A stretch of 64,000 bases of DNA from Hydrolagus colliei (taxonomy: Eukaryota): the NCBI GenBank assembly GCA_035084275.1, contig CM068771.1, forward strand, positions 744,001 to 808,000. Reading direction: 5' to 3'. The notes below the pieces were generated by a model that did no database searches, was not told the DNA's origin, and worked only from the letters and a program-made list of their open reading frames with translations. Positions within the stretch are counted from its first letter, which is position 1, and each line of letters opens with the position of its first letter. The translations under genes and the position numbers were made by a program. Shown one piece after another: positions 9,495 to 56,294 of this stretch.

Positions 9495-10800
9495 ATTGGC
9501 CATAATGTCGCCTATAATGGGCAACTTCAACCTCCACCTAAACTCCCCTTGAACCACATCTTCTAAATTCACTGCCTTGTTCTCCTTCCTGAACCTCACT
9601 CTTCACATAAACTCACTGATCCACAAACATGGCATCATCCTTGACCTCGTCATCACCCATGACCTTGACATTTCCAACGTGAGCATTATGAACAAGGCCA
9701 TTTCGGACCACTTCCTCATTTCCTTCTTCTTTCACATTCCTCTCTCCTCCACCAAGACCTCAACCATACTCTACCACCCATGGAAAAGGCTATCCCCTAA
9801 GACCCTCACAAAGGCCCTCATATCCTCCACCTGGTTTGAGTCCTACCTCATAAATGGCCAGCAGTACATCTCCACAAACAGTTTTTCCTCCCGCTCTAAT
9901 CTGGTTACCTGCACAGAACCCCAACGATCCATCCTTGGGCCTCTCCTCTTCCTAATCTATATGCTCCCTCTTGAGGATGTCATCCACAGACATGGGGCAC
10001 ACGTGTATGCGGATGACAATCAATTTTTCAACGTCACTTTGGAGCCCTGATATCTGTCAGCATGTCTGTCAGATATCAGGAGCTGGATGTGCACAAATTT
10101 TCTTCAGCTAAACATTGACAAATCAGAAGCCTTACTCTTTGGCTCTCATCAATGTCTTTGATTGCATGGCTCTCCCTACTCCACCTTCCTGACCTGCCCC
10201 TAGAACTCCGCAAACCCATACACAACTTATACGTCACGTTTGTCCCCCAATTGTACTTCCTCCCCTACATCTAGTCATTCACCAGCACTGCTTTCTTCCA
10301 TCTCCAACACGTCGACCGTCTCAGCCAATATCGCACATGAAAAGCCACCAAAAGCTCCCCCATTATCCCAGTCCTTGCCAGACTTCACTGGCTCCCTGTC
10401 CTGGAGAGGATCAATTTCAAGATCCTCGCTCTTGTTTTCAAATCCCTCCATCGTCTGCACCCCCCTACCTCTCTGACCTCTCTCACCAAACCAGCACCCG
10501 CTACCTTCCTTCCACTAGGTCTGGCTTCCTCCGTGTCTCCTGAATCCTCTGCTCCCATCAGTGGCCATGCCTTCAGCCACTATGCCCCAAGGCTCTGAAA
10601 TTCCCTTCCACACTCCCTTCACCTTGCCCCCTCTCTTCCTAGCTTCAGGTGTTGGCAAAAGACCTTTCTTTTCAACCGCTGTTTTGGTCAGCTTCTTCCC
10701 CTTACCCCTGGCTCAGTCCTGGGATCCATTGTTGGGAAGCGCTCTGAGATGCCATCTGGCGTGGAGGGCGCTATATGAATCCAAGTTGTTGTTTGTTGTT
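9495..10800 (+). mobile_element. L2 LINE fragments with 3' tail
   Basis: ILDLVITH, ISDHFLISF, PQRSILGPLLFLIYMLPL, YADD remnants, ending in ggcgctatat...gttgttgtt. Confidence 0.8.
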
Positions 10801-10981
10801 GCCCCCTCCATCACAGCCCCCCTCCCCACCCTCACTGACCCCAGAAGTAGACTGCGGGCTCCCTCAGGCTGTGGTGCTCCACACTGACCCTTCTCTGCCC
10901 CCTATACAACCTCATCCTCCCTCCTCTCATCACTGCCCACCTCACACCCTCCATCGCCCTTCCACCCAACCCATCACTGAC

Positions 10982-11263
10982 CCCAGAAGTGGACTGCGGG
11001 CTCCCTCAGACTGCGATGATCCACCTTGCAGGTAAACTCATCCCCAGGACGGGGTACGAAGCTCAGGTAGGTGAACCTCTGGAAAGAGTAATCCTTCTCC
11101 ATGTAATATTCAGTAATGTTCACACCCTCCTTCACCGGCTCGTTGTTCCTCAGCCAATTCATCATCAGCGCCGGGGGATAAAATCCAGCAGCGTGGCAGA
11201 TCAGCGTGTTCATCACACCCCATTCAATAGGTTTCTTAGGGTAAACAGCAATCTCTGGCTGGA
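10982..11263 (-). CDS. mhc2a: MHC class II alpha chain, exon 3 (alpha-2 Ig C1-set domain)
   Basis: 282 nt, phase 1/1, acceptor tccgcag|TC and donor TGG G|GTCAGT. Encodes IQPEIAVYPKKPIEWGVMNTLICHAAGFYPPALMMNW...NITE...FTCKVDHRSLREPAVHFW, with the C1-set C-W-C pattern and an NIT sequon. Confidence 0.97.
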
Positions 11264-11299
11264 CTGCGGAGAGAGAGAGAGAGAGAGAGAGAGTGATTG

Positions 11300-17335: not shown

Positions 17336-18215
17336 AGGGGATGGTGTGTGCGCGGGTGGTGTGTGTGGGGGGAGATGGTGTGTGGGGGGATGGTGTGTGT
17401 GGGGGAGGGGATGGTGAGTGTGGGGGGATGGTGTGTGGGGAGGGATGGTGTGTGTGGGGGGATGGTGTGTGTGGGGGGGGGATGGTGAGTGTGGGGGGAT
17501 GGTGTGTGGGGAGGGATGGTGTGTGGGGGGGATGGTGTGTGGGGGGGGGGATGGTGTGTGTGGGGGGGGATGGTGTGTGGGGGGGGATGGTGTGTGGGGG
17601 GGGATGGTGTGTGGGGGGGATGGTGTGTGGGGGGGATGGTGTGTGGGGGGGATGGTGTGTGGGGGGGATGGTGTGTGGGGGGGATGGTGTGTGGGGGGGA
17701 TGGTGTGTGGGGGGGATGGTGTGTGTGTGTGTGTGTGGATGGTGTGTGGGGGGATGGTGTGTGGGGGAGATGGTGTGTGTGGGGGGATGTTGTGTGTGTG
17801 TGGGGGGATGGTGTGTGTGTGTCTGGGGGGATGGTGTGTGTGTGTGGGGGGATGGTGTGTGTGGCGATGGTGTGTGTGTGTGGATGGTGTGTGTGTGGGG
17901 GGGGATGGTGTGTGTGGCGATGGTGTGTGTGTGTGGATGGTGTGTGCGGGAGATAGTGTGTGGGGGGGATGTTGTGTGGGGGGGGGGTGGTGTGTGTGTG
18001 GGGGGGAATGGTGTGTGTGGGGGGATGGTGTGTGTGTGGGTGGGGATGGTGTGTGTGGGTGGGGATGGTGTGTGTGGGGGGAGGATGGTGTGTGTGTGTG
18101 GATGGTGTGTGAGGGAGATAGTGTGTGTGGGGGGGATGGTGTGGGTGGGGGGGGATGGTGTGTGGGGGGGGTGGTGTATGTGTGGGGGGATGGTGTATGG
18201 GGGGGTTGTGGTGTG
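17336..18215 (+). repeat. G-rich satellite (GGGGGGATGGTGTGT)n, ~880 bp
   Basis: Directly visible ~14-18 bp units with G4-G8 runs; ends ~300 bp from the exon 2 donor. Confidence 0.95.
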
Positions 18216-18522
18216 TGTCGGTGGGGAGGTGGCAGTTGGGAGGGGTTTGGTGGGACCTGAAAGGTTGGGGAGAGTGGGCGAAGCGGAGGGATTGAAGGAG
18301 AGTATTCCAGAGTTTGGAATTTGGAAAGCAGGATCTCCGGAGTTTGGGGGGGAGGGAGGAGCAGGAGCCGGTGCTAGGAGATGGGAGAGGTCGGGAAGAG
18401 CCAGGGAGTACTTCACACACACCCCCCAGTGTGCTGTATATACACACACAGTGACTATAAACACACGCAGCACTGTACACCCCCCCCCCCCCCCCCCCCT
18501 CCCAGTGTATTTGCTGACTCAC

Positions 18523-18780
18523 TGCTGGGCTCCGGGGTGTCTCCGTGTGAAAGCTGTTTCCAGACACGTACGCTGATTTTACAGGTTTGAATCTCCTGTA
18601 ACACCCCCTCCACTCCGCCCTGGATACTGTGCCCGTCGAATTCAGGCAGGCGGGCGACCTCCTTCCCCAGGGCAAAATCCATGTAAAACAGCTCATCCCA
18701 GTCAACCTCAATATCAAACTGCTGGACAGGGGCCTGGTCCTGGTCCTGACACAGGTACACCAACGAATCATCGTGTAAAT
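18523..18780 (-). CDS. mhc2a: MHC class II alpha chain, exon 2 (alpha-1 peptide-binding domain)
   Basis: 258 nt, phase 1/1, acceptor tttgtgtcag|AT and donor AGC A|GTGAGT. Encodes YLHDDSLVYLCQDQDQAPVQQFDIEVDWDELFYMDFALGKEVARLPEFDGHSIQGGVEGVLQEIQTCKISVRVWKQLSHGDTPEPS, with DxDELFY and RLPEF motifs. Confidence 0.96.
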
Positions 18781-22853: not shown

Positions 22854-22917
22854 ATTTGGCAGCCCCCACCGCCTGGGCGAGGATCAGGGTCGCGGTGATG
22901 AGGAATGTTGCTCCCAT
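22854..22917 (-). CDS. mhc2a: MHC class II alpha chain, exon 1 (signal peptide)
   Basis: ATG at 22917, MGATFLITATLILAQAVGAAK plus 1 nt, donor AAA T|GTGAGA. Phase matches exon 2, and it lies ~80 bp downstream of the Y box. Confidence 0.92.
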
Positions 22918-22998: not shown

Positions 22999-23039
22999 CC
23001 AATCACACGGCCGCCTCTCACAACTCACTTGTTGCTGGG
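22999..23039 (-). promoter_or_regulatory. Proximal MHC class II X1-X2-Y promoter module
   Basis: Minus strand: X1 CCCAGCAACAAGTG (23039-23026), overlapping X2-like TGAGTTG, 19-bp spacer, Y box GTGATTGG (23006-22999). Matches the RFX/CREB/NF-Y module and its 19-20 bp X-Y spacing. S box not securely identified. Confidence 0.85.
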
Positions 23040-24642: not shown

Positions 24643-25049
24643 TACCCTTTCCTCCCTTTTCTCTCTCACCCCACTTTCTGATTGATTGATTAATTCATTG
24701 ATTCATTAATTGATTCATTGATTCATTCATTGATTGACCTGGATTTGATTCCTGGGCAGGGCAAAAGTGAGGCTTGCTCCACACGCCTGTTTACCTAGCA
24801 GTAAGTAGGAACCCTCTTGTAAGTTCACTGATGGATCCGTTTTTCCTAGATGATAATCTCTTCATATAATAATAATTCTATATCCAATGTAAGGATTATT
24901 ATTGTAAGAAAACTATTGCTCCTCCCCACTGTTTACTGAAACATCACAAATAAATTATAATACTAAGCTGTGCAGGAATATAAAAAATAAATAAAATGGG
25001 TTTTCTTCGACATACTGTACTTATAAATTTTGTTGGTCGGCCGGGTGTC

Positions 25050-25190
25050 TGACAGGCCTGAGAGAGGGGGTAGCACAGGCCTGAGAGAGGGGGTAACAAA
25101 CGCCTGAGAGAGGGGATAACAAAGGCCTGAGGGAGGCGGTAATAAAGGCCTGAGAGAGGGGGTAGCACAGGCCTGAGAGAGGGGATAATA
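25050..25190. repeat. 23-24 bp minisatellite (caggcctgagagagggg...)x6
   Basis: Six visible units. Confidence 0.85.
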
Positions 25191-25319
25191 TGCACACACA
25201 ATTCCATGCACATATCAGTCACACACACAAGCAACAAACACACTGACACAAAGTCACACGTACACAAAATCATACACACACTCATACTGTGATAGCCCAG
25301 GCTCACTGAGGGGTAGGCA

Positions 25320-25560
25320 GAGGTTTAGAAAGCTGTGCGGTGGTTTAGGAGTGGGGGAAGTGTAGCTGAGTTGGAAAGTCCCTGGCTGGGAGTCAACGCC
25401 TCAGACAGTAATACCATAAACAATGATTTAACACAGAACAAACACATCAACAGCATGGGTTTAGATACGAGTCAGCAATGTCCTGCAATACACCAATGAG
25501 CTGCTGTGTCCACATCTTGTCACTTGTTACTCGGTCAGACAGTGACTCCCTCTGCCCTGT
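25320..25560 (-). promoter_or_regulatory. Distal module A: X-Y box plus NF-kB and ETS motifs
   Basis: X1 CCGAGTAACAAGTG (25534-25521), 20-bp spacer, Y CTCATTGG (25500-25493), kB GGGACTTTCC (25382-25373), GGAAGTG ETS-type core on the + strand ~25357. Confidence 0.7.
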
Positions 25561-27185
25561 ACCACACACAATGCACTGTATCTGCATTGTACCCTCCAAA
25601 CAGGCTCTCACTGCCCTGAGAGTGGGTTAAGAGAGGAAGGAGGGGGTAAGTCAGATCCTATGAATGCTCAGAACTCCCATGTCTGAAAGATTAAATCCCA
25701 AATCCCTTGATGAAAATAAAACAACAATAAATTGGTCATTTCATCCCACAACTGTTTGTGGGCTACTGCTGTGCGCAATTGGCTGCCATATTTTGCCCAC
25801 AGATGTGGCAGCCAATTGTCACTTCACTTTACTCTATATATTGTGAAGCGCTTTGACACCTCTAGAAGATGTGAAAAGCACTATATCAAATGTAAAAATT
25901 GTTAATATTATCATTATTGAGAACCTCTGGCCTAGAGTTTTGATCTGGATTTGTTTAAAGGCTGACGTTTATATTTCTGATAAAATAATTTGGAGAATAA
26001 TCAAGTCAGTCGGAGGGGAATCTGCCCTGTGGAAGAGATATCCAAAACAAGATCTTTACAGACATGACGGGGACAATCACACATACACATATTCAACATT
26101 TCCATACAGATATAGACTCACACACATTCAAACAACAACAAAATTACACTCGTATAGTGCCTTTCACATCAGGAGAACAACCCAAGGTGCTGGACAGTCA
26201 CCACTTCAGACCTGAGCTGAGGACAGTGGGGGAAGAGGGAAGGGGGAATTAGGAGTTGCCAATGGGTCCATCAAAGAGGAGAGTCTTGAGGTGAGATTTG
26301 AAGAAGGCCAGGGAGGGGCGAGGTGGATGGACTGCAGGATGGAGTTCCAGAGGTTGGGGGCAGCGTGGCTAAAGGCTGGCCAAGGGGTGGTGGGTGCGTC
26401 TGGGGACATGGAGCAGGCCGGAGCCTGCTGAGCAGAGGAGGCAGGCAGGTTGGTAAGGGATTACAAAATCACAGATGTCGGGTTGGTGGGGTGTGGTGGA
26501 GGGGGGGGGGGGGGGGGGGGGCGGGGTGAGGTTATGGAGGGCTTTAAATGTGAGGATCAGGATCTTGAATTGGATCCTCTGGATGATGGGGAGCCAATGG
26601 TTGGGTTAGGATGGGGGAGATGGAGTCACATCCTCACACGCAGACAGTCACACATACAGTCATACACACAGAATCTCACAACTACAAAATCAACTGCACT
26701 CAAACACTAAATGACATAAACACTCTCTCTCTCACACACTGTTAGTCCCCGGCTTGGTTTGGGGTAGGCAGTACGTCCCTTCAGCCTGTTCTGTCATGGC
26801 TGATCTGAAATTCAACTCCAATTCCCTGCCCTTGCCCATATCCCTTAATACCCTGACCTAACAAATATCTATCTATCTCTGGCTTGAAAATGGGAATGGA
26901 CCCAGCAACTACAGTCCTTGGAAAAGAGAATTCCAGATTTCAATTACCCTTTCAATAAAACTCTACCTTGATTCCACTGGGAACTGGCCTGGATCTAATT
27001 TTAAGACTGTGGCCCTTGTTCTGGATTCTGTTTCCCTATACCTCCCCAATTGAATGTCTTGATTATTTTAGAAATCCCAATCAGATCATTCCTCAACCTG
27101 TTAAATTCAAGGATGTACTTGAGGTTGATTAATATTCGGTAAGTCAGGGTATTAAGGGAGATGGGGAGAAAGTGGGACATTGGAA

Positions 27186-28110
27186 TTGAAAGGGTTATTA
27201 GAAAAACTATTTCCACTCGTGGGTGAATCTGTGACTCGTGGTCACAGATTTAAAATAGTTTCAAGGCGCAGTAGAGGGGAGCTGAGGAGAATTTTTTTCA
27301 CTCAGCGAGTTGTTCGAATCTGGAATGCATTGCCTGAAAAGGTGGTGGAGGCTGATTCGATAACAACTTTTAAAAGGGAATTAGATCTTTATTTAGGAAG
27401 AACGGGTCTATTAGGCTATGGGGAGCGGGCAGGGCAATGGGATTGAATCGCTCTTTTCAAAGAGCCGGCACAGACTAGATGGGCCGAATGGCCTCCTTTT
27501 GTGCCGTAAAATTCTATGATTCTATGATTCTATGATCAGGTTCATAGATCAGCCATGATCTAACTAAATGGCAGAATAAGTGCAGTTTTGGTCTCCTTAT
27601 TTAAAAAAGGACATACTTGACACATACGTGCAGCATAGATTCACTAGGTTAGTTCCTGGGATGAGGGGACTGATCTATGAGGATAGGTTGAATAAACTAG
27701 GGCTGTATTCTCTAGAGTACAGAAGAATTAGTGGGGATCTTATTGAAACATATAAGCTTCTTAAAGGACTAGATAAAGTAGGACTGTTTCCCCTGGTAGG
27801 AGAATCTATAACCAGGGGTCACAGTCTTAAAATTAAGGGTCAGCCTTTTAGAACAGGGTTGAGAAAACATTTTTTTCACTCAGAGGGCAATGAATTTATG
27901 GAATTCACTACCACAGAAGGCTGTAGATGCTCAGTCCGTGAACATTTTCAAGGCTGAGACTGCTAGATTTTTGAACAATAAAGGGATTAGGGGATATGGT
28001 GATAGGGGAGGTAATCAGAGTTAGGTGAGAAGATCATGATCTTATTGAATGGCGGAGCAGGCTCGAGGGGCCGAATGGCCTACTCCTGCTCCTAATTCTT
28101 ATGTTCATAT
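27186..28110 (+). mobile_element. Young CR1 3' end (27186-27535) followed by an older CR1 3' end
   Basis: 27186-27535 matches the reverse complement of the 1.3-kb and 49.1-kb copies, with a (ttctatga)3 tail. ORF 27580-27957 is a CR1 RT C-terminus. Confidence 0.88.
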
Positions 28111-28799
28111 GCTATTAAGGTCAAAGGACTGAATGGCCTATTCCTGTTCCTTTGTTCCTGAATAGAGACCATGTTTATGAAACCTGTCATGATAATTTAA
28201 CCTGTTAAAACCTGATATAATTCTGATGAATCTGCACTGCAAACACCACCCGTTCCCCACCACCACCTCCCACTAAGCCAATATATCCTTCATGAGGTGT
28301 GATGCCCAACACTGAACCCAGTGTAGCAGTTGCTGTCTGACCAAGGCTCTATTTAGTTAAAGCATCACTTCCTCTCCTCTATATTGCAGACCTTTGAGAT
28401 AAAGGCCAACATCCCATTAGCCATTTTGATAACATTTATAATAATAATCCTTGCCTTTGATATAGCGCTTTTCACATCTTTTCAACATGAATAGAGTATA
28501 CTGTAAAGTGAATTAATTGCATACTTGCGGGCAAAATGCTGCCGCAAACTATGCACAGTAGTGACCCACAAACAGTCGTGGATTAAAATGATCAATTCAT
28601 TATAGATTTTATTATAGATTATAGATTTTTTTGGGGACAGATTATTATTAGGCATGTAGAGTAAGAAAACTTGCCCACGGTTTCACCCTGACCTGCCTGG
28701 GTTCGAAACACAGGTCTCACACTTATAAGTTGAGTGATCTAACAGGATCTATAGGACTACAGGACTACAGTAGTCTGATCTACAGGACTCCACATTTTA

Positions 28800-28960
28800 G
28801 GAGAGGGAGCAGTGGTTAAGAAGTGGGAAGTGGAGATGTGGTTGGGAAGTCCCTGGCTGGGAGTCATTGCCTCAGACATTAACACCTTAAACAATGATTT
28901 AACACAGAACAAGCATGCCAACACCACGGGTTTAGACATGAGTCAGTTACTGTATCCCCC
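28800..28960 (-). promoter_or_regulatory. Distal module B: paralog of A/C retaining kB, ETS and AP-1 motifs but lacking X-Y
   Basis: Aligns by eye with 25330-25480 and 30360-30510. kB GGGACTTCCC (28853-28844), TGAGTCA at 28939-28945. Similarity ends before the Y box. Confidence 0.55.
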
Positions 28961-29945
28961 ACTCAGCCTCTGCACTGAGAGAGTGAGTGAGATACGCCTG
29001 AGAGTGAGGGTAAGATAAGCCCCATGAATACCCACTTCTGTGCAAATCACCACTCAGAGATTGAGAATCTGTGGGTTAGAATTTTTATCTGGATTCACTT
29101 AAAGCCTGATGTGATTTTCAATAAAATAAACCAGTGAATTGTTAAATCAGACAGTGGGGAGGGAATCTGCCATGTGGGAGTGAGACCCTATACAAGATCT
29201 TTACACAGCATCCTCACATCCCTGCTCGTCGGCCTTCCCAACGCAAGTTGCGGATCACCTAGAACTCTGCATGTCCTCTCTTACACCAGGCTCTGTGACT
29301 CCATCACTCTGAGGCTCGACCAGCTCCACTGACATCCCATCCCTCAGAGGATCGAGTCCAAATTGCCTTGTACTGTACCCTCCTACCTCTCAGAACTGCT
29401 AAACCCTTATGAACCTGTCCCTCTCCCCACTCAGGAAGTGCCGGCCTACTCAGTGTCCCCTGCCAGGCCCACCTCAAAATTAGCGATTCAGCCTCTCTGC
29501 CACAAACATCTGGAACTGCATCCCATATTCCCTTTTCCTCACTCTCTCCCTGCCTCAATAAAGCCACACCTCAAGACTCCTCTTTGACCGTGCCTTTGGC
29601 CACCAACTGAGACTCCCCTGCCTACCACCCTAATTGACCCCAAGTCCCTCAATCCTAATCCCTAACTGTTCAGCACCCTGGGAAGTCCTCCCTTTGTGAA
29701 AGATGCTTTACACATGTGATTTTGTACCATATTGTTTTATATTATTAGAGACAGAGCAACGATGGTCAGAATAGAACTAGAACACAGAAGAGGGACTATC
29801 ACATACATACTTGCACACAAATGCAGTCTTACACACTCACGGAATCAAAAACACTCACAAATACCTATATACCCACACTGAATCACACACACATAATTTC
29901 TCACACCATCACACCATCTCACACATAAAGTCATACGCAATCACA

Positions 29946-30242
29946 GGGGGCACTCGATAGTCTGAAGGTTTAATAGTCCAAAGGTTCGGTAGTCCGAAGG
30001 TTCGATAATCCGAACACACAAATTTCCTATACCCGGGGTAGTTACCATGGTTACCGCTCGATAGTCCGAAAATAAATTTAATTAATCCGAACATTTGGTG
30101 TGATATTCTGAAGGTTCATTAGTCCAAATGTTAGTGTTAGGGTTAGGGTTAGTGTTAGAGTTCGGGGAAGCTTCGGACTAACGAACCTTCAGACTATTGA
30201 ACCTTATGACTAATGAACCTTCGGACTATCGGGCGGTAACCA
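29946..30242. mobile_element. Probable non-autonomous DNA transposon (MITE)
   Basis: Inverted arrays of (t)cgatagtccgaaggtt and aaccttcggacta; GGTTACCGCYCGATAGTCCGAA at 30049 is inverted at 30220-30241; internal ttaggg-like tract; possible 8-bp flanking duplication caatcaca. Confidence 0.55.
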
Positions 30243-30344
30243 CAATCACATATAGGTGAACTCAAACACTATAAATGTCTCAAACACTATAAATGTCACG
30301 AACACTCTCTGTAATGCATACTGACAATCCCAGACTCAGTGTGA

Positions 30345-30600
30345 AGTTTAGAAAGAGGGAGTGGGGCACTACTGGTTTAGGAGGGGGAAGTGTGGCTGTG
30401 GTTGGAAAGTCCCTGGCTGGGATTAAACGCCTCAGACATTGATACCATAAACAATGATTTAGCACAGAATAAACACAGCAACAGCACGGGTTCAGATACG
30501 AGTCAGCAATGGCCTGGGATACACCAATGAGCTGCTGTATCTACATCTCGTCACTTGTTACTGGGTCAGACAGTGACACTCTCTGCCCTGTACCTCACAC
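30345..30600 (-). promoter_or_regulatory. Distal module C: X-Y box plus NF-kB and ETS motifs
   Basis: X1 CCCAGTAACAAGTG (30565-30552), X2-like TGACGAG, 20-bp spacer, Y CTCATTGG (30531-30524), kB GGGACTTTCC (30413-30404). Confidence 0.72.
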
Positions 30601-30699
30601 TGTATCTACACTGTACATTCCACACTGCCTCCCTCTGTCCTGTACCTCACACTGCATCTATACTGTACTCTCCATACAGCCTCCCTGGCTCAGTGTGTG

Positions 30700-34387: not shown

Positions 34388-34919
34388 CTAAAAACACGTT
34401 ACGCATAATATGAAGCATGTACACGATGGAGGGGAATAGGGGTAGCACATGCACGGGCTAAACACAGCCGAATTAGAACTACAATGAATTAAATGGTTAA
34501 ACAAATAACCAAAATAAAATGATCCCATGTCCGAGATATTGACCCCAACCTTCAAACCAACCCGTGAACGAAGGCCACCAAGAGGCGCCATATGGATTCC
34601 GAAACTTGTCCACCTCAGACCGAATGTGGCGGACAAGATCAGTGATGTTCTCGGAGTTATCGGGGATGTAAGTGCAACATTCGGAGCCAATAAGGGCACA
34701 GGTACACCCTTTCTCAGCAATGATAATATCAAGGGCCATACGATTCTGGAGGGCAACAGTACGGATAGCAACCATTTCGCCGTCAACTGTTCTATGGCAC
34801 CCACAGTATCATTAGCCGCTTGTTCGAGAATGCTGTCCCGACGCATGATGGCGAGTTGCCACTAGGGACATGCATACACTCACAATGGTCAAGCACAACA
34901 ACGCCCGAAGAGCTGCCAT
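34388..34919 (-). pseudogene. env: ERV env remnant: signal peptide joined to TM subunit, SU deleted
   Basis: MAALRALLCLTIVSVCMSL at 34919, then LQNRMALDIIIAEKG (immunosuppressive domain), CALIGSECC (CX6CC) and a membrane-spanning segment; frameshifted. Confidence 0.9.
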
Positions 34920-34926
34920 TTTATTG

Positions 34927-35500
34927 ATCAATCACTCGTTTCATGTGAGAAGCGTGGACCCAGGCTTTTTTGCCCTCAACTTTGATGGCAGATGGGGTTG
35001 TCAGCAACACCAGGTAGGGACCTTCCCACTTGGCACCCAAAGGTTCCTTGTGCAGCTTCTTCACGTAAACTCAAACTCCTGGGACCAAGTCGTGTCCCCC
35101 TTTGGGTGGTTCACCCCAAGCCGCTGATACCGGTCGAGAAGCAGAACTCACAGCATTCGTTAATTGCTGACAATATTCTAGCAAAGTTTCGCTCCTTAAA
35201 TGACAATCAGCTTTTCGCAAATCAATAATTCAAGACAGAGACATAGGTCTTCCGGTTATAACCTCAAACGGGCTCAAACCGGTGGTCGGGTTAGGTGTGG
35301 CTCGAATGCTGCACAGTACCATAGGTAGTGTTTGGGGCCACGGAACACCATCCTGATGATATTTGGCCAACCGGTGTTTCAATGTCCTCTTCATCCGTTC
35401 CACTTGTCCTGAGGACTGTGGGTGGTACGGGCAGTGTAGACTCCATTTGATGTTCAATAGCCTGCTGACTTCTTGGCACACGATGCCTTCGCCCCTAGCA
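34927..35500 (-). pseudogene. pol: ERV integrase C-terminal half
   Basis: HCPYHPQSSGQVERMKRTLK, LSPFEVITGRPM and [18 protein letters not shown] (GPY/F module). Confidence 0.92.
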
Positions 35501-35870
35501 ACGCGGGCAGTCTGTTAAATAATAATAATAATAATAATAATCCTTGCATTTGATATAGCGCTTTCCACATCTTATCAATGTCTCAAAGCGCTTCACAGAA
35601 TATACTGTAAAGTTGATTGACTGTATATATTTGTGGGCAAATCGCGGCAGCCAATTGCGCACAGCAGTGTCCCACAAACAGTCATGGATTGAAATTACCA
35701 ATTTTATTATTGTGGTTTTTTTGGAGGGATTATTATTAGGCGTGTGGAGTAAGGCAACTTGCCCAAGTTTTCGCCCTGACCTGCCTGGATTCGAACACAG
35801 GTCTCCCCAGCTTGGTCTTCCCAGCTTGCAAGACAAGTGCTCTAACCACTGAGCCACAGGAGCCACATGT

Positions 35871-35986
35871 TGCTTACCATTGAAAGGTAGGAGGTGTTCA
35901 TATTGTTTTGATAAACATGTTATTTCAGCTCCGGTGTCAAGGAGGCATTCAACGTCACGATGGCCCACTCTCAGAGTAACGTATAG
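35871..35986 (-). pseudogene. pro: ERV aspartic protease N-terminus
   Basis: LYVTLRVGHRDVECLLDTGAEITC with the DTG active site; truncated by a SINE. Confidence 0.9.
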
Positions 35987-35999
35987 TCAGTCCTCCCTG

Positions 36000-37685
36000 T
36001 GGTTAAGGAGTGCCATTAAACTACACGGGAGGGAGAGAGCGGGCTCTACTTTTTTTTGCCGCTTGGACCAGCGCTTGCTGATGTTGGGTGGATAAATCAC
36101 GGAACTGGTCAATCAGTGAGGTAGAGGGTTGGGGCCGATAATCCTCGTCCCGGTCCCGGGAATCATCACGGCGTCAGGACTGGTTGCGCGACCCTTCTCC
36201 CCTTCCGCCGCCGTTACCTCTGTTCTTCTTGGAGCAGCAAGTTTTGGCCCAGTGGCCCTCCTTCCCGCAATTGTGGCACTTTCCCGGATGCGCTGATCCA
36301 TCTGTTGATCGGGAGGGCGGTGCTCGCCACTCTGGAAGGTGCAGAGTTTGACACCCTGGTCTCGGTCAATCTTATTGCATTTATCCACTAGTTCTCCATA
36401 CTCCCTACCGCGTTCTTCCCAATCAGGCAAAGTAAGCTTTACTAGTTTGCTCAGTTCGGGCTTCAGTCCGGACATAAATGCTGCTTTCAAGGGACCATTT
36501 GTTATTCTGTCAAGATCATCGGAATTGGCGCCTGGGTGCATTCACGAATGTTCCAGCCATACAGCGCGGAATAGTTCGTCGTATTCCAAAACTCCTCGGT
36601 TACTTTCTATTCACACGCCGCCACTTTACCCCAATCGGTTTTGGCTGGACCTTGTTCCACTAACCATATGCGAATAGCTGTCCAGCCGGCATTCAGATCT
36701 TGGTCATCTCCCAGTGCTTCCTCTATGGCTTGAACCAATCATCGTGCTCCTCTACCCGTTGTCATTACACTCAGAATCTGGGTGCCATCGTTCAGGTGGA
36801 GTCTGTAAATCCCCTTCAAATGACTTAACTCTTCCCAGGTCTTGAGACCTCCTTTCTTTGGGTGAGGGAGGGTTTTGGACCATTTGTCAATTTTCTCAGG
36901 ATCAGTCGGTTTGTGGATGGGTACAAATTCATAACCCCATTCAGCTGCTGGTGGATGTCCTGTTATTGTTTCCCCATTTTGCTCACTGACGGGTGCGGTT
37001 CTTCTCACTTAATTTTCCTTTTTTTTTCGTATAATCGTGGACCCGTGGAAGCCGACTTCGGATCCGATCCCCAGGGGTTGCCGTCCCATTTTTCGTCTTC
37101 ATCGGGGTCTGGGTCACTTTCGCTGGTGGTATCTTCAGGATAAGCTGGGGGTAAAACACTGGGCTGTTTTGGGGCTGGGAGTGGTCTGGCGGTCGGATAT
37201 ATCGACGGGATCGGCAAAGGAGGCGCCGAGGGATTCATCACATTACGTGAAGATTCTTCTATTTTGGCGATCTTAGCTTTCAACTTCTCAATTTCGGCAT
37301 CTTCCCTATCCATGTCCGCCTGCTTCTTGCTTATTCTCTCAGTCATGGCAAGCAATTGCTCCTTTGCCCGAGCGCTTTCCGTGCTCTGTTGCGCCTGCCT
37401 CATGACTTCTCCTCGCTACTGGAGCTGTCCCATCACTATGAGCGACCATCTGAGACCTTCTTTTCCCTTCGGACGGGTAGTTTGTCCCCAGGCTTTCTTT
37501 ATATCATCCAGATTCCACTGACCGTCTCCAATACTGTAGTTACTTTGCATTTGATTCTGGGCATACCCCAGATCTTGATTTTGTTCGATGAACTCTTTGA
37601 GTTGTTTTAACATTTCACCTTTGGTAACATCAGGTGGGGCTAGCCCTCCTTTTACTGTGGTGGTGGATTTACTTGAATCACTCAT
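36000..37685 (-). pseudogene. gag: ERV gag, frameshifted
   Basis: ATG 37685 (MSDSSK), coiled-coil region, PSAP and PPAY late domains, capsid-like AFMSGLKPEL, CCHC knuckle CHNCGKEGHWAKTC at ~36235-36285. Confidence 0.88.
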
Positions 37686-37946
37686 GGTGCCAGTGATATT
37701 CGGTACTAGGCTTGAGACCGGGGGCAATCGAATGCCGTAGATAGGATTCTTACTTTTCCCGCCGCAGAGCTCTGAAATAGTCTCTCGAGATATCTTATCT
37801 TGTTTCAGCAGTTCGTTTAAGAATCGCGAGAAAACGTAAACACTACCGATACTTGAGGCGAGGAATTTTAAGAGGATTCCTTACCTCTGGGTCACGTCTG
37901 ACCGATGTGGGTCTCTGGTTAGCCTTATGTTTTCTTGTCTTCTGCG

Positions 37947-44949: not shown

Positions 44950-45773
44950 CCATATATCTCCGCATATACGGCGCACTTTTTTGCACGTCGGAAGATCTCG
45001 AAAGTTGGGGGTGCGCCCTATACGCAGACACAAGAAATGTTGAGCCTCGGAAATACAGTAAACAGGAGGGGCGGGCGGCGCGCTGTCAGCCAGGGTTTGG
45101 TCAGTGTCCGGCGGGGTTTGGGGGGAATGGATGACGGGGCTTCAGCCTCGGCCGCCCGGGCATCGGCAACAGCAGCGGACTTCAGTGATGAGCCTGCTGC
45201 CTGCCTTCTGCCTAACCCAGTCTNNNNNNNNNNNNNNNNNNNNNNNNNNNNNNNNNNNNNNNNNNNNNNNNNNNNNNNNNNNNNNNNNNNNNNNNNNNNN
45301 NNNNNNNNNNNNNNNNNNNNNNNNNNNNNNNNNNNNNNNNNNNNNNNNNNNNNNNNNNNNNNNNNNNNNNNNNNNNNNNCTTTCTCCCTCTCTCTCTCCC
45401 TGGCTGCCTGCGTGCCTCTCTCCCTCTCTCTTTCCCTGGCTGCCTGCCTGCCTCTCTCCCTCTCTCTCTCACTGGCTGCCGGCCTACCTCTCTCCCTCTC
45501 TCTCTCCATGGCTGCTGGCCTGCCTCTCTCCCTCTCTCTCTCCCTGCCTGCGTGCCTGCCTGCCTCTCTCCCTCTCTCTCTCCCTGGCTGCCTGCCTGCT
45601 TCCCTCCCTCCCTCCCACTCTCCCTCCCTGCCAGCCTGCCTCTCTCTCTGCCTACCTACCTGTCTCTCCTGTCTCTCCTCCCTTCTGCCGGCAATATCAT
45701 TGAAAATGCTTCCGTTTTTTAGAAAAGGTCAAAAGTGGGTGGTGCGCCTTATACGCGGATTCGCCTTATACGG
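44950..45773. mobile_element. Tc1/mariner (Tc2/pogo-like) non-autonomous element spanning the gap
   Basis: TIRs CC(G/A)TATATCTCCGC(G/A)TATA.GGCGCAC at both ends, TA on the right, inserted in L2. Only its right half recurs in later array units. Confidence 0.7.
45224..45379. other. Assembly gap (156 N)
   Basis: Run of N. Confidence 1.
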
Positions 45774-48700
45774 TAGATGAAATGGTGGTTAGAGGTGGCC
45801 TTGTCAACGATGGTGACATCCGAGACACTGAGGCCCCGGGTGATAATAATAATAATATTCCTTGCATTTGATAAAGAAATTTTCACATCTTATGAATGGC
45901 TCAAAGCGCTTCACAGAATATACTGCAAAGTGAATTGACTGTATATTTGTGGGCAATATCAGGTCAAGCGAGTGACCAAGCATGTGGTTGCAGAGTAGAT
46001 ATGAAGGGAGAGGTTGCGATGGGAGAGGAGGGAGGAGAAGTCCGAGGAGGTCATGTAATATGGCATGAATTGGAGGTTCAAATCGCCGAGGATGATGAGG
46101 CGATAGGAGCCGAAGCAGAAGGATCCTAGGGGGGTGGAAATGTCAGAGATGAAGGTGGGGGAGGATTTTAGGGGTTCGTAGAGAAGGAGAATTTTGAGGG
46201 AGAGATGGGCAGTGGGTGAGATGTTCAAACGAGGAATGGGCGATAGGGCAAGTGGTGCCCCGGAGATGAGGGCCACACTACTGCCATGTCGGTTGGGACA
46301 CGGTGAGAGATGCAGCCATTAGGTGCGGCGTCCTCTAACCAATGAGCTAGAGGACTGTGTCTCTCACACTCTCTCTTTCTCTGTCTCACTCTCTCGCATT
46401 GTCTCACACTCACTGAGACTTACTCACTATGACAGTCTGTCACTCTCACACAAACTCACCCACAAAAACAGTCACTGCGCATTACTGTGACTCACACATG
46501 AAACATAGTCACTACACTTTAGAGTCTGTCTCACCCAACAAACACAGTCACTACACTGACCCCATCTCCCCTCTCGGTCACTCACTCACCTTTTCTGAAT
46601 TCATTGGTCAAGTCTTGCTTTGCCAGCATGTGACCAGGGGGGGGAAACGATAGCAGCATGTGACCAGGGGTGGGGACAATAGCAGAATGTGACCAGGAGG
46701 ACAATAGCAGCATGTGACCTGGTGGGGGGACAATAGCAGCACATGACCGGGGGGGGAACAATAGCAGCACGTGACCAGGGGGGGAACAATAGCAGACGTG
46801 ACCAGGGGGACAATAGCAGTCGTGACCAGGGGGACAATAGCAAGGGGAGGGCTGCTCTAGGATCTTTGGCAACCTCTGAGGTGCAGGACAAGGCCAGGGC
46901 TCAATGCTCAGCTCATCTGGCAAACTACAGTTCTGTAGCTCCCTGCCTGCCTGACTGCCTCTCTCCCTCCCTGCCTGCGTGGCTGCCTGCCTCTCTCCCT
47001 CTCTCTCTCGCTGGCTGCCGGCCTCTCTCTCGCTGGCTGCCGGCCTGCCTCTCTCCCTCTCTCACTCCCTGCCTGCCGGACTGCCTCTCTCCCTCTCTCT
47101 TTCCCTGCCTGCGTGCCTGCCTGCCTCTCTCCCTCTCTCTCTCCCTGGCTGCCTTCCTGCTTCCCTCCCTCCCTCTCTCCCTCCCTGCCTGCCTGCCTCT
47201 CTCTCTCCCTACCTACCTGTCTCTCCTGTCCCTCCTTCCTTCTGCCGGCAATATGATTGAAAATGCTTCCGTTTTTTTTTCACCAAGAAAAGGTCAAAAG
47301 TGTGGGGTGCGCCTTATATGCGGAGATATACGGTAGATGAAATGGTGGTTAGAGTTGGCCTTGTCAACCATTGTGACATCCGAGACACTGAGGACCCGGG
47401 TGATAATAATAATAATATTCCTTCCATTTGATACAGAACCTTTCACATCTTATGAATGGCTCAAAGCGCTTCACAGAATATACTGTAAAGTGAATTGACT
47501 GTATATTTTTTGGCAAAATCAGGTCAAGCGAGTGACCAAGAATGTGGTTGCGGAGTAGATGTGAAGGGAGAGGTTGAGAGAGGAGAGGACAGAGGAGAAG
47601 TCTGAGGAGGTCATTTAAGAGGGCATGAATTGGAGGTTCAAATCGCCGAGGATGATGAGGCAATAGGAGCGGAGGCAGAAGGATGCTAGGGGGGTGGAAA
47701 TGTCAGAGATGAAGGTGGGGGAGGATTTTGGGGATTCGTAGAGAAGGAGAATTTTAAGGGAGAGATGGGCCGTGGGTGAGATGTTCAAATGAGGAATGTG
47801 CGATAGGGCAAGTGGTGCCCCGGAGATAACGGCCACACCACTGCCATGTCGGTTGGGACATGGTGAGCGATGCAGCCATTAGGTGCGGCGTCCTCTAACC
47901 AATGAGCTAGAGGACTGTGTCTCTCACACTCTCTCTTTCTCTGTCTCACTCTCTCGCATTGTCTCACAATCACTGAGACCTACACACTATCACAGTCTGT
48001 CACTCTCACACAAACTCACCCACAAAACCAGTCACTGCGCTTTACTGTGACTCACACATGAAACATAGTCACTACACTTTAGAGTCTGTCTCACCCACAA
48101 AACACAGTCACTACACTGACCCCATCCCCCCTCTCGGTCACTCACTCACCTTTTCTGAATTCATTGGTCAAGTGTTGCTTTGCCAGCATGTGACCAGGCG
48201 GGACAATAGCAGCATGTGACCAGGGGGACTATAGCAGCACGTGACCAGGGGGGGACGATAGCAGCATGTGACCAGGGGGGGAACAATAGCAGCACGTGAC
48301 CAGGGGGGACAATAGGAAGGGGAGGGCTACTCTAGGATCTTTGCCAACCTTTGAGGTGCAGGACAAGGCCAGGGCACAATGCTCAGCTCATCTGGCAAAC
48401 TACAGTTCTGTAGCTCCCTGCCTGCCTGCCTCTCTCACTCTCTCCCTCCCTGGCTGCCGGACTGCCTCTCTCCCTTTTTCTCTCCCTGCCTGCTGGACTG
48501 CCTCTCTCCCTCTGTCCCTCCCTGCCTGCGTGCCTGCCTGCCTCTCTCCCTCTCTCTCTCCCTGGCTGCCTGCCTGCTTCCCTCCCTCCTTCTCTCCCTC
48601 CCTGCCTGCCTTCCTCTCTCTCTCCCTACCTACCTCTCTCTCCTGTATCTCCTCCCTTCTGCCGGCAATATCATTGAAAATGCTTCCGTTTTTTTTTCAC

Positions 48701-49110
48701 CTACAAAAGGTCAAAAGTGGGGCGTGCGCCTTATACGCGGAGATATATGGTAGATGAAATGGTGGTTAGAGGTGGCCTTGTCAACGATGGTGACATCCGA
48801 GACACTGAGGCCCCAGGTGATAATAATAATAATATTGCTTGCATTTGATATAGAACTTTTGGTTGGTAGAGAAGGAGAATTTTGAGGGAGAGATGGGCAG
48901 CGAGTGAGATGTTCAAACGAGGAATGGGCGATAGGGCAAGTGGTGCCCCGGAGATGAGGGCCACACCACTGCCATGTCGGTTGGGACATGGTGAGAGATG
49001 TAGCCATTAGGTGCGGCATCCTCTAATCAATGAGCTAGAGGACTGTGTCTCCCACACTCTCTCTTTCTCTGTCTCACTCTCTCGCATTATCTCACACTCA
49101 TTGAGACTTA

Positions 49111-50866
49111 ATCATAGAATCATAGAATTTTACGGCACAAAAGGAGGCCATTCGGCCCATCTAGTCTGTGCCGGCTCTTTGAAAAGAGCGATTCAATCCC
49201 ACTGCCCTGCCCGCTCCCATAGCCTAATAGACCCGTTCTCCCTAAATAAAGATCTGATTCCCTTTTAAAAGTTGTTATCGAATCAGCCTCCACCACCTTT
49301 TCAGGCAATGCATTCCAGCCTCCACCACCTTTTCAGGCAATGCATTCCAGATTTTTCACTCGCTGAGTGAAAAAATTTCTCCTCAGCTCCCCTCTACTTC
49401 GCCTTGAAACTATTTTAAATCTGTGACCACGAGTCACAGATTCACCCACGAGTGGAAATAGTTTTTCTCTATTTGCCCTGTCGAAACCCCTCATGATCTT
49501 ATAAACCTCTATTAGGTCTCCCCTCAATCTTCTCTGCTCCAGAGAGAATAACCCTAGCCTATCTAGCCTCTCCTCATAGCTGAAGTCCCTCAATCCTGGC
49601 GCCATCCTAGTAAATCTTCGTTGTACCCTTTCCAATGCCTTCACATCCTTTCTGTAGTGTGGTGACCAGAATTGAACACAGTATTCCAGCTGAGGCCTCA
49701 CCAAAGTCCTATAGAGGTTAGTCAGCACTTCCTGACTTTTGTACTCTATACCCCTATTTATAAAGCCTAGTATCCCATATGCCTTCTTAACAGCCTTGTC
49801 TACCTGTCCTGCCACCTTCAACGAGTCACTAACACAAATCCCCAGGTCTCTCTGTTCCTTTACACCATTTAAAATTGTACTATCTAGCCTATATTGCCTC
49901 CCTTCATTTCTTCTCCCAAAATGCATCACCTCACACTTCTCTGCATTAAACTTCATCTGCCATGTGTCTGCCCACTTTACCAATTTGTCTATATCCTCTT
50001 GCAGATGGCTACTATCCTCCTCACTGTTTACTATTCTCCCTAACTTAGTGTCATCTGCAAACTTGGAAACTGTACTCCGTACACCCAAGTCCAGATCATT
50101 GATGTAGATTACAAACAGCAATGGTCCCAAAACCGATCCCTGTGGCACACCACTGCTCACTTCCCTCCAATCTGAAAAACAGCCGCTCACTACAACTCTC
50201 TGCTTTCTGTCTCGCAGCCAGTTGTGGATCCACGCTGCCTCTGTCCCTTTTACGCCATGGGCCTTTAATTTCATAATAAGTCTCTCATGTGGCACTTTGT
50301 CAAATGCCTTTTGAAAGTCCATGTAAACTACATCAACTGCGCTACCATTATCCACCCATTCCGTTACCTCATCAAAAAATTCTATCAGATTTGTAAGGCA
50401 AGATTTGCCTTTAACAAATCCATGTTGACTGTCCTTTATTAGCCTATATCTTTCTAAGTGAAGATCTACCTTGTCCCTGATTATGGACTCTAGAAGTTTG
50501 CCCACTACCGACGTTAGACTGACTGGTCTGTAGTTACCAGGCTTGCCCTTCTGCCCCTTTTTATACAAGGGAGTAACATTAGCTATCCTCCAGTCCTCTG
50601 GCACGACCCCTGTGTCCAAGGAAGATTGAAAGATCGTGGCCAGAGTCCCTGCTATTTGCTCCCGTGCCTCACTTAGTAACCTAGGGTGCATCCCATCCGG
50701 ACCAGGTGACTTATCCACCTTGAGCGACGTCAACCTTTTTAGCACTTCCTCTCTGGTTATAATTATTCTATCCATTTCTCCTACCCTCTCCTCTAATACC
50801 ATGGCATTGGCTGTATCCTTTTCTTTTGTGAAGACAGAGGCGAAGTACTCATTCAGTACATCAGCC
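49111..50866 (-). mobile_element. Young 5'-truncated CR1 with an uninterrupted RT ORF
   Basis: ORF 49333-50880 (515 aa) covers the whole RT; atcatagaat tail at 49111; ctta on both flanks; small duplication near the 3' end breaks the C-terminus. Confidence 0.96.
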
Positions 50867-52221
50867 TTATACACTATCACACTCTGTCACTCTCACACAA
50901 ACTCACCCACAACAACAGTCACTGCGCTTTACTGTGAGTCACACATGAAACATAGTCACTACACTTTAGAGTCTGTCTCACCCACAAAACACAGTCACTA
51001 CACTGACCCCATCGGCCCTCTCGGTCACTCACTCACCTTTTCTGAATTCATTGGTCAAGTGTTGCTTTGCCAGCATGTGACCAGGGGGACAATAGCAGCA
51101 CGTGACCCGGGGGGGGACAATAGCAGCACGTGACCAGGGGGGACAATAGCAGCATGTGACCAGGGGGACAATAGCAGCACGTGACCCGGGGGGGGGACAA
51201 TAGTAGCACGTGACCAGGGGGAGGAACAATAGCAGCACGAGACCAGGGGGGGACAATAGCAAGGGGAGGGCTGCTCTAGGATCTTTGCCAACCTCTGAGG
51301 TGCAGGACAAGGCCAGGGCACAATGCTCCGCTCATCTGGCAAACTACAGTTCTGTAGCTCCCTCTCTCTCTCCATGGCTGCCTGCCTGCCTCTCTCCCTC
51401 CCTACCTGCCTGCCTCTCTCTCTCCCTACCTACCTGTCTCTCCTGTCTCTCCTCCCTTCTGCCGGCAATATCATTGAAAATGCTTCCGTTTTTTTTTCAC
51501 CAAGAAAAGTTCAAAATTGGGGGGTGTGCCTTATACGCGGAGATATACGGTAGATGAAATGGTGGTTGGAGGTGGCCTTGTCAACGATGGTGACATCCGA
51601 GACACTGAGGACCCGGGTGATGATAATAATAACAATAATATTCCTTGCATTTGATATAGAACTTTTCACATCTTATGAATGGATCAAAGTGCTTCACAGA
51701 ATATACTGTAAAGTGAATTGACTGTATATTTGTGGGCAAAATCAGGTCAAGCGAGTGACCAAGAATGTGTTTGCAGAGTAGATGTGAAAGGAGAGGTTGA
51801 GATAGGAGATGAGAGGAGGGAGGAGAAGTCTGAGGAGGTCATGTAATAGGGCATGAATTGGAGGTTCAAATCGCCGAGGATGATGAGGCGATAGGAGCGG
51901 AGGCAGAAGGATGCTAGGGGGGTGGAAATGTCAGAGACGAAGATGGGGGAGGATTTTGGGGGTTGGTAGAGAAGGAGAATTTTGAGGGAGAGATGGGCAG
52001 CGAGTGAGATGTTCAAACGAGGAATGGGCGATAGGGCAAGAGGTGTCCCGGAGATGAGGGCCACACCACTGCCATGCCGTTTGGGACATTGTGAGAGATG
52101 TAGCCATTAGGTGCGGCGTCCTCTAACCAATGAGCTAGAGGACTGTGTCTCTCACACTCTCTCTTTCTCTGTCTCACTCTCTCGCATTGTCTCACACTCA
52201 CTGAGACTTACACACTATCAC

Positions 52222-54950: not shown

Positions 54951-56294
54951 ATCACAGTCTGTCACTCTCACACAAACTCACCCACAACAACAGTCACTGC
55001 GCTTTACTGTGAGTCACACATGAAACATAGTCACTACACTTTAGAGTCTGTCTCACCCACAAAACACAGTCACTGCACTGACCCCATCGGCCCTCTCGGT
55101 CACTCACTCACCTTTTCTGAATTCATTGGTCAAGTGTTGCTTTGCCAGCATGTGACCAGGGGGACAATAGCAGCACGTGACCCGGGGGGGGACAATAGCA
55201 GCACGTGACCAGGGGGGACAATAGCAGCATGTGACCAGGGGGACAATAGCAGCACGTGACCCAGGGGGGGGGACAATAGTAGCACGTGACCAGGGGGAGG
55301 AACAATAGCAGCACGAGACCAGGGGGGGACAATAGCAAGGGGAGGGCTGCTCTAGGATCTTTGCCAACCTCTGAGGTGCAGGACAAGGCCAGGGCACAAT
55401 GCTCCGCTCATCTGGCAAACTACAGTTCTGTAGCTCCCTCTCTCTCTCCCTGGCTGCCTGCCTGCCTCTCTCCCTCCCTACCTGCCTGCCTCTCTCTCTC
55501 CCTACCTACCTGTCTCTCCTGTCTCTCCTCCCTTCTGCCGGCAATATCATTGAAAATGCTTCCGTTTTTTTTTCACCAAGAAAAGTTCAAAATTGGGGGG
55601 GGTGCCTTATACGCGGAGATATACGGTAGATGAAATGGTGGTTAGAGGTGGCCTTGTTAACGATGGTGACATCCGAGACACTGAGGACCCGGGTGATGAT
55701 AATAATAATAATATTCCTTGCATTTGATATAGAACTTTTCACATCTTATGAATGGCTCAAAGTGCTTCACAGAATATACTGTAAAGTGAATTGACTGTAT
55801 ATTTGTGGGCAAAATCAGGTCAAGCGAGTGACCAAGAATGTGGTTGCAGAGTAGATGTGAAGGGAGAGGTTGAGATAGGAGATGAGAGGAGGGAGGAGAA
55901 GTCTGAGGAGGTCATGTAATAGGGCATGAATTGGAGGTTCAAATCGCCGAGGATGATGAGGCGATAGGAGCGGAGGCAGAAGGATGCTAGGGGGGTGGAA
56001 ATGTCAGAGACGAAGGTGGGGGAGGATTTTGGGGGTTGGTAGAGAAGGAGAATTTTGAGGGAGAGATGGGCAGTGGGTGAGATGTTCAAACGAGGAATGG
56101 GCGATAGGGCAAGTGGTGTCCCGGAGATGATGGGAACACCACTGCCATGTCGTTTGGGACATTGTGAGAGGTGTAGCTATTAGGTGCGGCGTCCTCTAAC
56201 CAATGAGCTAGAGGACTGTGTCTCTCACACTCTCTCTTTCTCTGTCTCACTCTCTCGCATTGTCTCACACTCACTGAGACTTACACACTATCAC

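Follow-up and report, generated by a model that had tools for sequence, protein, structure and literature searches.

The DNA upstream of an MHC class II alpha gene in Hydrolagus colliei contains three same-sense copies of a ~0.3-kb cassette, and two of them, A and C, carry a class II type X1-(X2)-Y module at canonical spacing that is non-random. The cassettes lie in a window of 64,000 nucleotides, the whole stretch that was analysed, in which an intact class II alpha gene occupies the minus strand downstream of them. A tblastn search with ~190 class II alpha and C1-set proteins identified the four exons of this gene only. Its features are as follows; the Callorhinchus milii alpha sequences used for comparison are cDNA-derived proteins.

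23026-23039, minus strand: X1 box of the alpha promoter, CCCAGCAACAAGTG
22999-23039, minus strand: proximal module of the alpha promoter, X1, 19 nt, then the Y box GTGATTGG
22854-22917, minus strand: alpha exon 1 (leader), found by tblastn
18523-18780, minus strand: alpha1 exon, found by tblastn, 54% identical to Callorhinchus milii alpha
~10980-11267, minus strand: alpha2 exon, found by tblastn, 76% identical to Callorhinchus milii alpha
223-~366, minus strand: exon for the TM region and tail, found by tblastn

Upstream of the promoter (23 kb) the same search detected no class II or C1-set exon, in agreement with an earlier sequence-only reading of this DNA, which had stated that no coding exon follows the cassettes.

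The cassettes were delimited by blastn, pairwise alignment and nhmmer.

25283-25618, minus strand: cassette A (blastn, pairwise alignment, nhmmer E 2e-130)
25345-25565, minus strand: core of cassette A (220 nt), ~90% identical to C
28796-29060, minus strand: cassette B (blastn, nhmmer), with kB and ETS sites kept and X-Y absent
30317-30642, minus strand: cassette C (blastn, pairwise alignment, nhmmer E 2e-132)

Cassettes A, B and C are situated 2.5 kb, ~5.8 kb and 7.5 kb, respectively, upstream of the alpha X-Y promoter. With the promoter X1 placed at 23026-23039, the distances of A and C are 2,495 and 7,526 bp, so the values of 2.5 and 7.5 kb given in the sequence-only reading are right, as is its statement that the elements have the promoter's orientation. 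A and C share 80.5% identity over 339 aligned nt and 90.5% over an ungapped 200-nt core; A and B are 81% identical over 153 nt. Pairwise alignment of A and C revealed that identity falls to 50–60% on both sides of the 220-nt core, a plateau of ~90% that gene conversion could equally explain. When a profile built from A, B and C was run with nhmmer against the 64 kb of TE-rich DNA, the only matches were the three cassettes themselves (E 1e-74 to 1e-132), with SINE, LINE and MITE sequence between them. The earlier description of mutually similar islands in otherwise transposon-derived DNA holds. The cassettes have no CpG footprint, their observed/expected ratio of 0.13–0.31 being the same as that of the flanks.

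The X-Y modules of A and C comprise the following elements.

25521-25534, minus strand: X1 box of A, CCGAGTAACAAGTG, with an RFX-type RGYAAC half-site; 12/14 positions identical to the promoter X1
directly 3' of the A X1, minus strand: X2-like TGACAAG
25493-25500, minus strand: Y box of A, CTCATTGG (inverted CCAAT), exactly 20 nt after X1
30552-30565, minus strand: X1 box of C, CCCAGTAACAAGTG; 13/14 positions identical to the promoter X1
directly 3' of the C X1, minus strand: TGACGAG at the X2 position, containing TGACG, a CRE half-site
30524-30531, minus strand: Y box of C, CTCATTGG, 20 nt after X1

The AGTAAC half-site in the cassette X1 boxes fits RGYAAC, the RFX motif. At the position of the CRE-like X2 box A and C differ by a single nucleotide (TGACAAG versus TGACGAG). 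Strict X-Y spacing is a defining trait of S-X-Y modules (PMC1802633). A motif scan with background statistics, which had been proposed as a check, found the pattern CNAGYAAC-N24-30-ATTGG three times in the window, in the promoter, A and C, against an expectation of 0.13, and three occurrences were reached in 1 of 200 shuffles. Since A and C derive from one another by duplication, the pattern represents two independent events, not three. The motif positions also bear out the earlier observation that X1 is followed after exactly 20 bp by Y in A and C, and its implication that B has no X-Y. In class II S-X-Y modules the S (W) box is located about 15–17 nt upstream of X1, and mammalian work indicates that it matters for CIITA recruitment. 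No S box was recognisable in the cassettes on comparison with the alpha promoter, no motif upstream of X1 being common to the two. The gene's own promoter resembles the cassettes in its X1 (12–13 of 14 positions identical), its inverted CCAAT Y box, its orientation and its spacing (19 versus 20 nt). It differs from them in that blastn found no DNA similarity to the promoter or exon 1 beyond X-Y, no exon follows the cassettes, and the cassette ATG is too close to Y.

Downstream of the position of X-Y, all three copies retain a kB decamer and an ETS core.

25373-25382, minus strand: kB decamer of A, GGGACTTTCC, 110 nt downstream of Y
25356-25362, plus strand: ETS core of A, GGAAGTG, with a G-rich 5' flank
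28844-28853, minus strand: kB decamer of B, GGGACTTCCC
28826-28832: ETS core of B, GGAAGTG
30404-30413, minus strand: kB decamer of C, GGGACTTTCC
30386-30392, plus strand: ETS core of C, GGAAGTG

In the 64-kb window the pattern GGGRNWYYCC has three matches only, one in each cassette, and the presence of the decamer and the GGAAGTG core in 3/3 copies is as previously described. Because the copies share these sites by descent, they count as one event rather than three. In PU.1-type ETS sites (GAGGAAGT) the 5' flank of the GGAA core is rich in purines and in A. The flank in the cassettes is GGGG or GTGG; being G-rich, it marks the core as generic ETS, and the PU.1-type label attached to it in the sequence-only reading has to be dropped.

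The three copies arose by local segmental duplication, at least twice, of a larger unit of ~0.8 kb consisting of a CACA-rich tract, the ~0.3-kb cassette and a tail. The flanks, which the copies have in common outside the cassette too, in matching order and sense, point to this origin, and the paralogous tails of units A and B demonstrate that what was duplicated is larger than the cassette. The parts of the units and the insertions in them are listed below.

25916-26060, minus strand: motif-free tail of unit A, 75% identical to its paralogue at 29060-29205 in unit B, used as neutral comparator
26699-26761, minus strand: detached downstream end (in the minus-strand sense) of unit B, a 71% match to 30279-30343, which adjoins C
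25701-25918, no strand assigned: SINE-like insertion in unit A, with 65–80% matches to >10 other copies in the window, missing at the matching site of B
27200-27535, plus strand: young LINE 3' fragment in unit B, 95–99% identical to 1317-1652 and 49110-49468
29954-30231, no strand assigned: palindromic insertion of MITE type separating B from C, seen as inverted repeats I7, I9 and I11

Inserted LINE and SINE sequence, ~2 kb in all, separates the detached end of unit B from its cassette, the LINE fragment lying between that end (26699-26761) and the start of cassette B at 28796; the LINE copy at 1317-1652 runs on into an RVT_1 ORF. In cassette B the X-Y module was removed by a ~110-bp deletion. 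B therefore cannot work as an X-Y element, and its complete loss of X-Y means that this site was not under constraint. The copy number of three is a by-product of duplication and not a selected array. One part of the sequence-only reading is supported: the cassettes near the class II gene have a non-random X1-(X2)-Y module in promoter-like orientation and no exon behind it. In addition, A lies at a position like that of the human DRA-LCR/XL4 element. The other part, an array of amplified enhancers or a locus control region, is not supported, given the duplication of a ~0.8-kb unit, the lack of X-Y in B, the lack of a recognisable S box and the reduction of the kB and ETS sites to one event.

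What the modules in A and C do at present is addressed by two readings. We tentatively favour, at somewhat less than even confidence, the view that takes A and C as distal elements of the XY-like type, similar to DRA-LCR/XL4 in humans. Slightly behind it, and nearly as likely, is the view that they are a neutral relic: the ancestral X-Y module once worked, and the present copies are functionless local duplicates. In the 200-nt core, A and C mismatch at 2/39 motif positions and at 17/161 other positions, a difference with Fisher p = 0.24 in a comparison of low power. The sequence-only reading had named conservation of motif positions no better than that of spacers as an outcome that would count against it; this outcome was obtained, with the same caveat of little power. 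Between A and B, the core (81%) is barely above the motif-free tail of the duplicated unit (75%). Nothing in this copy comparison shows selection on the motifs, as far as the aligned sequences indicate. The relic view accommodates these figures, together with the deletion of X-Y from B, the abundance of TE insertions in the duplicated units and the bulk-level CpG of the cassettes, and under it the motifs would survive in A and C because the two have diverged by only ~9%. On the other side, the A–C core is far better kept than its flanks, the cassettes are placed and oriented with respect to the alpha promoter in a way that recalls DRA-LCR/XL4, and in humans an intact XY-like sequence within a class II locus is bound as a rule (PMC1802633, PMC4230186).

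The comparison system for the distal-element reading is the human class II region. DRA-LCR/XL4, the distal S'-Y' module of HLA-DRA (PMC1904273), is an XY-like element ~2 kb upstream of that gene (PMC4230186), and sequence matches to the S-Y architecture predict RFX/CIITA binding unusually well in human (PMC1802633). Like these XL elements, A is an extra, gene-less X-Y module in a class II region with promoter-like X1-Y spacing (PMC4230186, PMC1904273, PMC1802633), and its distance from the alpha gene, –2.5 kb, is close to the approximately –2 kb of DRA-LCR/XL4. Unlike the human XL elements, A and C have no recognisable S box, carry a kB decamer together with an ETS core at a constant distance of 110 nt, and are duplicated copies of a larger repeat unit. 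According to the sequence-only reading, mammalian class II distal X-Y enhancers are mostly inverted, whereas A and C have the orientation of the promoter.

On the distal-element reading, the ancestral cassette held a genuine MHC-type X1-X2-Y module, with RFX and NF-Y sites at canonical spacing, and a kB decamer and ETS core ~110 bp downstream of it. Local duplication of the unit, at least twice, upstream of the alpha gene was followed by SINE, LINE and MITE insertions that split the units. With the full arrangement intact, A (–2.5 kb) and C (–7.5 kb) would act like human XL (S'-Y') elements: RFX, CREB and NF-Y may assemble on them, perhaps weakly, and the resulting recruitment of CIITA, local opening of chromatin and looping to the promoter would add to expression of the alpha gene. 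The kB/ETS half could supply inflammatory or leukocyte input. Should A and C turn out to be bound and to be active, control of class II genes by remote XY-like elements would not be confined to mammals. The jawed-vertebrate lineage that is the oldest still living would then have such elements too, about as far from the alpha gene as the human one, and they would offer a simple system for studying how the RFX/NF-Y/CIITA enhanceosome and the inputs from NF-kB were wired when adaptive immunity was young. If A and C are inert, the locus illustrates how segmental duplication in repeat-rich MHC DNA yields convincing-looking motif arrays.

A wider proposal is that the cassettes belong to a holocephalan-specific family of distal enhancers (X1-X2-Y, kB and ETS) that form clusters on both sides of a tail-to-tail class II beta/alpha pair, the one at 25–31 kb among them, and jointly constitute a locus control system. 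We regard this as unlikely; if true, it would place distal XY-like control with NF-kB input at the base of the jawed vertebrates, or point to convergence.

That the cassettes are a relic or alternative promoter with a first exon, either the 5' end of a lost class II gene (for example beta) or an alternative first exon of alpha, is quite improbable. On the minus strand an ATG (A) or GTG (B and C) does occur downstream of Y, followed by a hydrophobic, signal-peptide-like frame and then by GT-rich low-complexity sequence, as in alpha intron 1. However, the distance from Y to the ATG is 36 nt versus 82 nt in the real promoter, the ATG is present in A only, A is out of frame with B/C owing to a 1-nt indel, and the copies share no conserved splice donor. 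A hand count on the alignment gave ~14 non-synonymous to 4 synonymous differences, a neutral ratio, and the cassettes share nothing with alpha exon 1 or promoter DNA beyond X-Y. The tblastn search with class II alpha and C1-set proteins returned the four alpha exons only. The absence of a tblastn match to these proteins upstream of 23 kb, the frameshift and the neutral ratio count against the promoter of a separate gene relic, which the sequence-only reading had named as an outcome that would refute it.

LTR enhancers typically combine kB, ETS and CCAAT motifs. An origin of the copies as insertions of a mobile element, such as a solo LTR or a non-autonomous retroposon, with these motifs in its enhancer by chance would fit that make-up and the ERV remains at 34.4–37.7 kb of the window, but is the least probable account, given that there is no further copy in 64 kb of TE-rich DNA, the copies agree in their flanks outside the cassette, in order as well as in sense, neither terminal repeats nor target-site duplications were seen, the window ERV does not match the cassette, and the X1-20-Y architecture is specific to MHC genes.

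Several other candidate identities were considered. A coding exon was rejected on the plus strand (~9 non-synonymous to 1 synonymous differences between A and C, by hand count) and on the minus strand (the ~14 to 4 count and the frameshift). The LTR of the window ERV was rejected as the source of the cassette for want of a blastn match, and a repeat dispersed through the 64-kb window was rejected because the copies number three only, clustered, in the same sense and with common flanks. No known RNA family was found in the cassettes, the only match being mir-192 (E = 0.75), inside a SINE. Spurious ORFs spanning the cassette had no match in a collection of 5.8 billion proteins, which is uninformative. 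A homologue of the cassette is absent from two skate class II loci, L001 and L002, by nhmmer and the motif pattern; L002 has one proximal X-Y, recognised by eye and with a loosened pattern, and L001 has one weak match to the loose pattern.

The minus strand of the window carries an MHC class II alpha gene that is intact; among its named relatives the alpha chain of Callorhinchus milii is the nearest (alpha2 76%, alpha1 54% and leader 86% identical). When ~190 class II alpha and C1-set proteins were compared with the window by tblastn, the four alpha exons were found and nothing else. The proximal promoter carries an X1 box (the RFX site) and, 82 nt before the start ATG, GTGATTGG. Upstream of it are three same-sense cassettes of ~0.3 kb, here called A, B and C, whose motifs are all on the strand of the alpha gene.

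Features of the alpha gene and the cassettes
end at 223, minus: TM/tail exon
about 11267-10980, minus: alpha2 exon
18523-18780, minus: alpha1 exon
22917-22854, minus: alpha leader exon
23026-23039, minus: proximal promoter X1 CCCAGCAACAAGTG, 19 nt, then GTGATTGG
25283-25618, motifs on minus: cassette A
25701-25918: SINE-like element interrupting unit A
28796-29060, motifs on minus: cassette B
30317-30642, motifs on minus: cassette C

The intron after the alpha1 exon contains a long microsatellite with a 16-17-nt unit (17361-18263), which holds frames open for up to 495 codons (Pro/His/Thr-rich) and gives rise to spurious ORFs. At the class II alpha locus of the skate Rhinoraja longicauda (L002), the alpha promoter at 9817-9858 has another form of X1 (CCTGGAAACTGCTG), which TGATTGG follows after 21 nt, and a plain CCAAT is also present inside the X-Y spacer; a distal X-Y copy was looked for in the 10 kb upstream and none was found.

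A sequence-only reading had described three mutually similar modules, and these are real, being recovered by repeat finding and blastn. A and C align over 339 nt at 80.5%, with an ungapped 200-nt core at 90.5% (blastn, repeat search), and A 25324-25475 is 81% identical to B 28796-28946. The layout of A and C is X1, exactly 20 nt, CTCATTGG, 110 nt, GGGACTTTCC, ~10 nt and CACTTCC, and they lie 2,495 and 7,526 bp, respectively, from the promoter X1, in agreement with the 2.5 and 7.5 kb claimed. In B the ETS core and the NF-kB (kB) site (GGGACTTCCC) survive, but X-Y is gone: ~110 bp were deleted, and with them both boxes and the 52-nt repeats that lie upstream of X.

Motif scanning with background statistics located CNAGYAAC-N24-30-ATTGG three times in the whole window on both strands, with 0.13 occurrences expected. 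The sites are the promoter, A and C, and three were reached in just 1 of 200 shuffles. A and C being copies of each other, the X1-Y composite has two independent occurrences, a number still well beyond chance; a real MHC-type X-Y module was therefore present in the cassette ancestor. GGGRNWYYCC matches the window in three places, against 13.8 expected from shuffles, and all three are the kB decamers of the cassettes; sharing one ancestry, they represent a single event. GGAAGTG on its own is frequent in the window (18 seen, 11.9 expected).

The cassette copies arose by local segmental (tandem) duplication, not by transposition. Homology extends past the cassette, 25916-26060 of A matching 29060-29205 of B at 75%, and 30279-30343, adjoining C, matches 26699-26761, a segment that insertions of LINE and SINE pieces have since separated from B by 2 kb. 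A MITE-like palindrome is located before C. Once insertions are removed, each unit measures ~0.8 kb, has the same orientation as the others and consists of a CACA-rich tract, a cassette and a tail. Same-sense units with common flanks denote segmental duplication; the set of copies is not a purpose-built array. At 25031-25190 a 23-nt unit (AGGCCTGAGAGAGGGGGTAGCAC type) is repeated six times in tandem, perhaps all that is left of another, decayed repeat unit between A and the promoter; one or two occurrences of the motif are likewise seen in the X-proximal flanks of A (25604-25650) and B (28975-29021).

The observation itself was confirmed and the interpretation put on it is partly supported. 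On our best reading, a tentative one, A and C would be XY-like distal elements of the same kind as DRA-LCR/XL4 that arose through duplication, and B would be a dead copy. Sequence, order, orientation and spacing of the human S-X-X2-Y module are all strictly conserved, and RFX/CIITA binding was well predicted by matches to its profile (PMC1802633). At HLA-DRA there is a distal S'-Y' module with intergenic transcripts on its flanks (PMC1904273). This module, DRA-LCR/XL4, lies ~2 kb upstream, shows weak enhanceosome assembly with NF-Y remaining bound, and has enhancer or LCR-like properties; more XY-like elements are spread across the human class II locus (PMC4230186). In position and architecture, cassette A (-2.5 kb) closely parallels DRA-LCR/XL4. 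Unlike DRA-LCR/XL4, the cassettes share the orientation of the promoter, have no recognisable S box, carry a kB/ETS pair at a fixed distance and belong to a duplicated repeat unit. In a full-text literature search of incomplete coverage, no description of distal X-Y modules in cartilaginous fish was found.

Nearly as likely is that the cassettes are a neutral relic. Formally, motifs are no better conserved than spacers, an outcome that the sequence-only reading had named as refuting it, in a comparison to which only three copies give little power: mismatches in the A-C core affect 2 of 39 motif positions (X1, X2-like, Y, kB) and 17 of 161 others (Fisher p = 0.24). In the X-Y spacer 3 of 20 nt differ, the A-B core (81%) is scarcely above the motif-free tail (75%), and cassette CpG observed/expected (0.13-0.31) is not above that of surrounding DNA. 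One suggestive sign is the plateau of ~90% A-C identity over 25345-25565, with 50-60% on both sides, which selection, gene conversion or unstable repeat-rich flanks could all produce.

A relic promoter with its exon is less likely. Frames are open on both strands by chance and substitutions are neutral (non-synonymous:synonymous ~9:1 on the plus-strand frame and ~14:4 on the minus-strand frame, hand counts), and a coding exon was rejected. The minus-strand coding frame was also rejected, being shifted by a 1-nt indel and having an ATG in A only, 36 nt from Y. An Rfam search of the cassette returned no family. A mobile element is likewise less likely: the window is rich in dispersed repeats, yet it contains no further copy of the cassette, and a profile from the three copies found only A, B and C over the 64 kb.

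Remains of an endogenous retrovirus occupy 34400-37730 on the minus strand, with part of env TM (TLV_coat, E 1.5e-7), a weak match to an integrase core, gag-like ORFs without Pfam matches and no intact long ORF. Origin of the cassette from this element was rejected, there being no match to the remains at 34.4-37.7 kb. LINE 3' fragments at 27200-27535, 49110-49468 and 1317-1652 are mutually 95-99% identical, and the family (RVT_1 ORF at 2147-2752) has therefore been recently active in the genome. A run of 156 N (45224-45379; assembly gap or mask) is present. From 45390 to 64000 extends a tandem array of a ~4.07-kb unit, in at least four to five units with many segments 92-100% identical; shorter versions of ~1.5 kb come before it at 45.8-49 kb, and within it are a SINE-like element and a minisatellite of ~26 nt (GACCAGGGGGGACAATAGCAGCA type).
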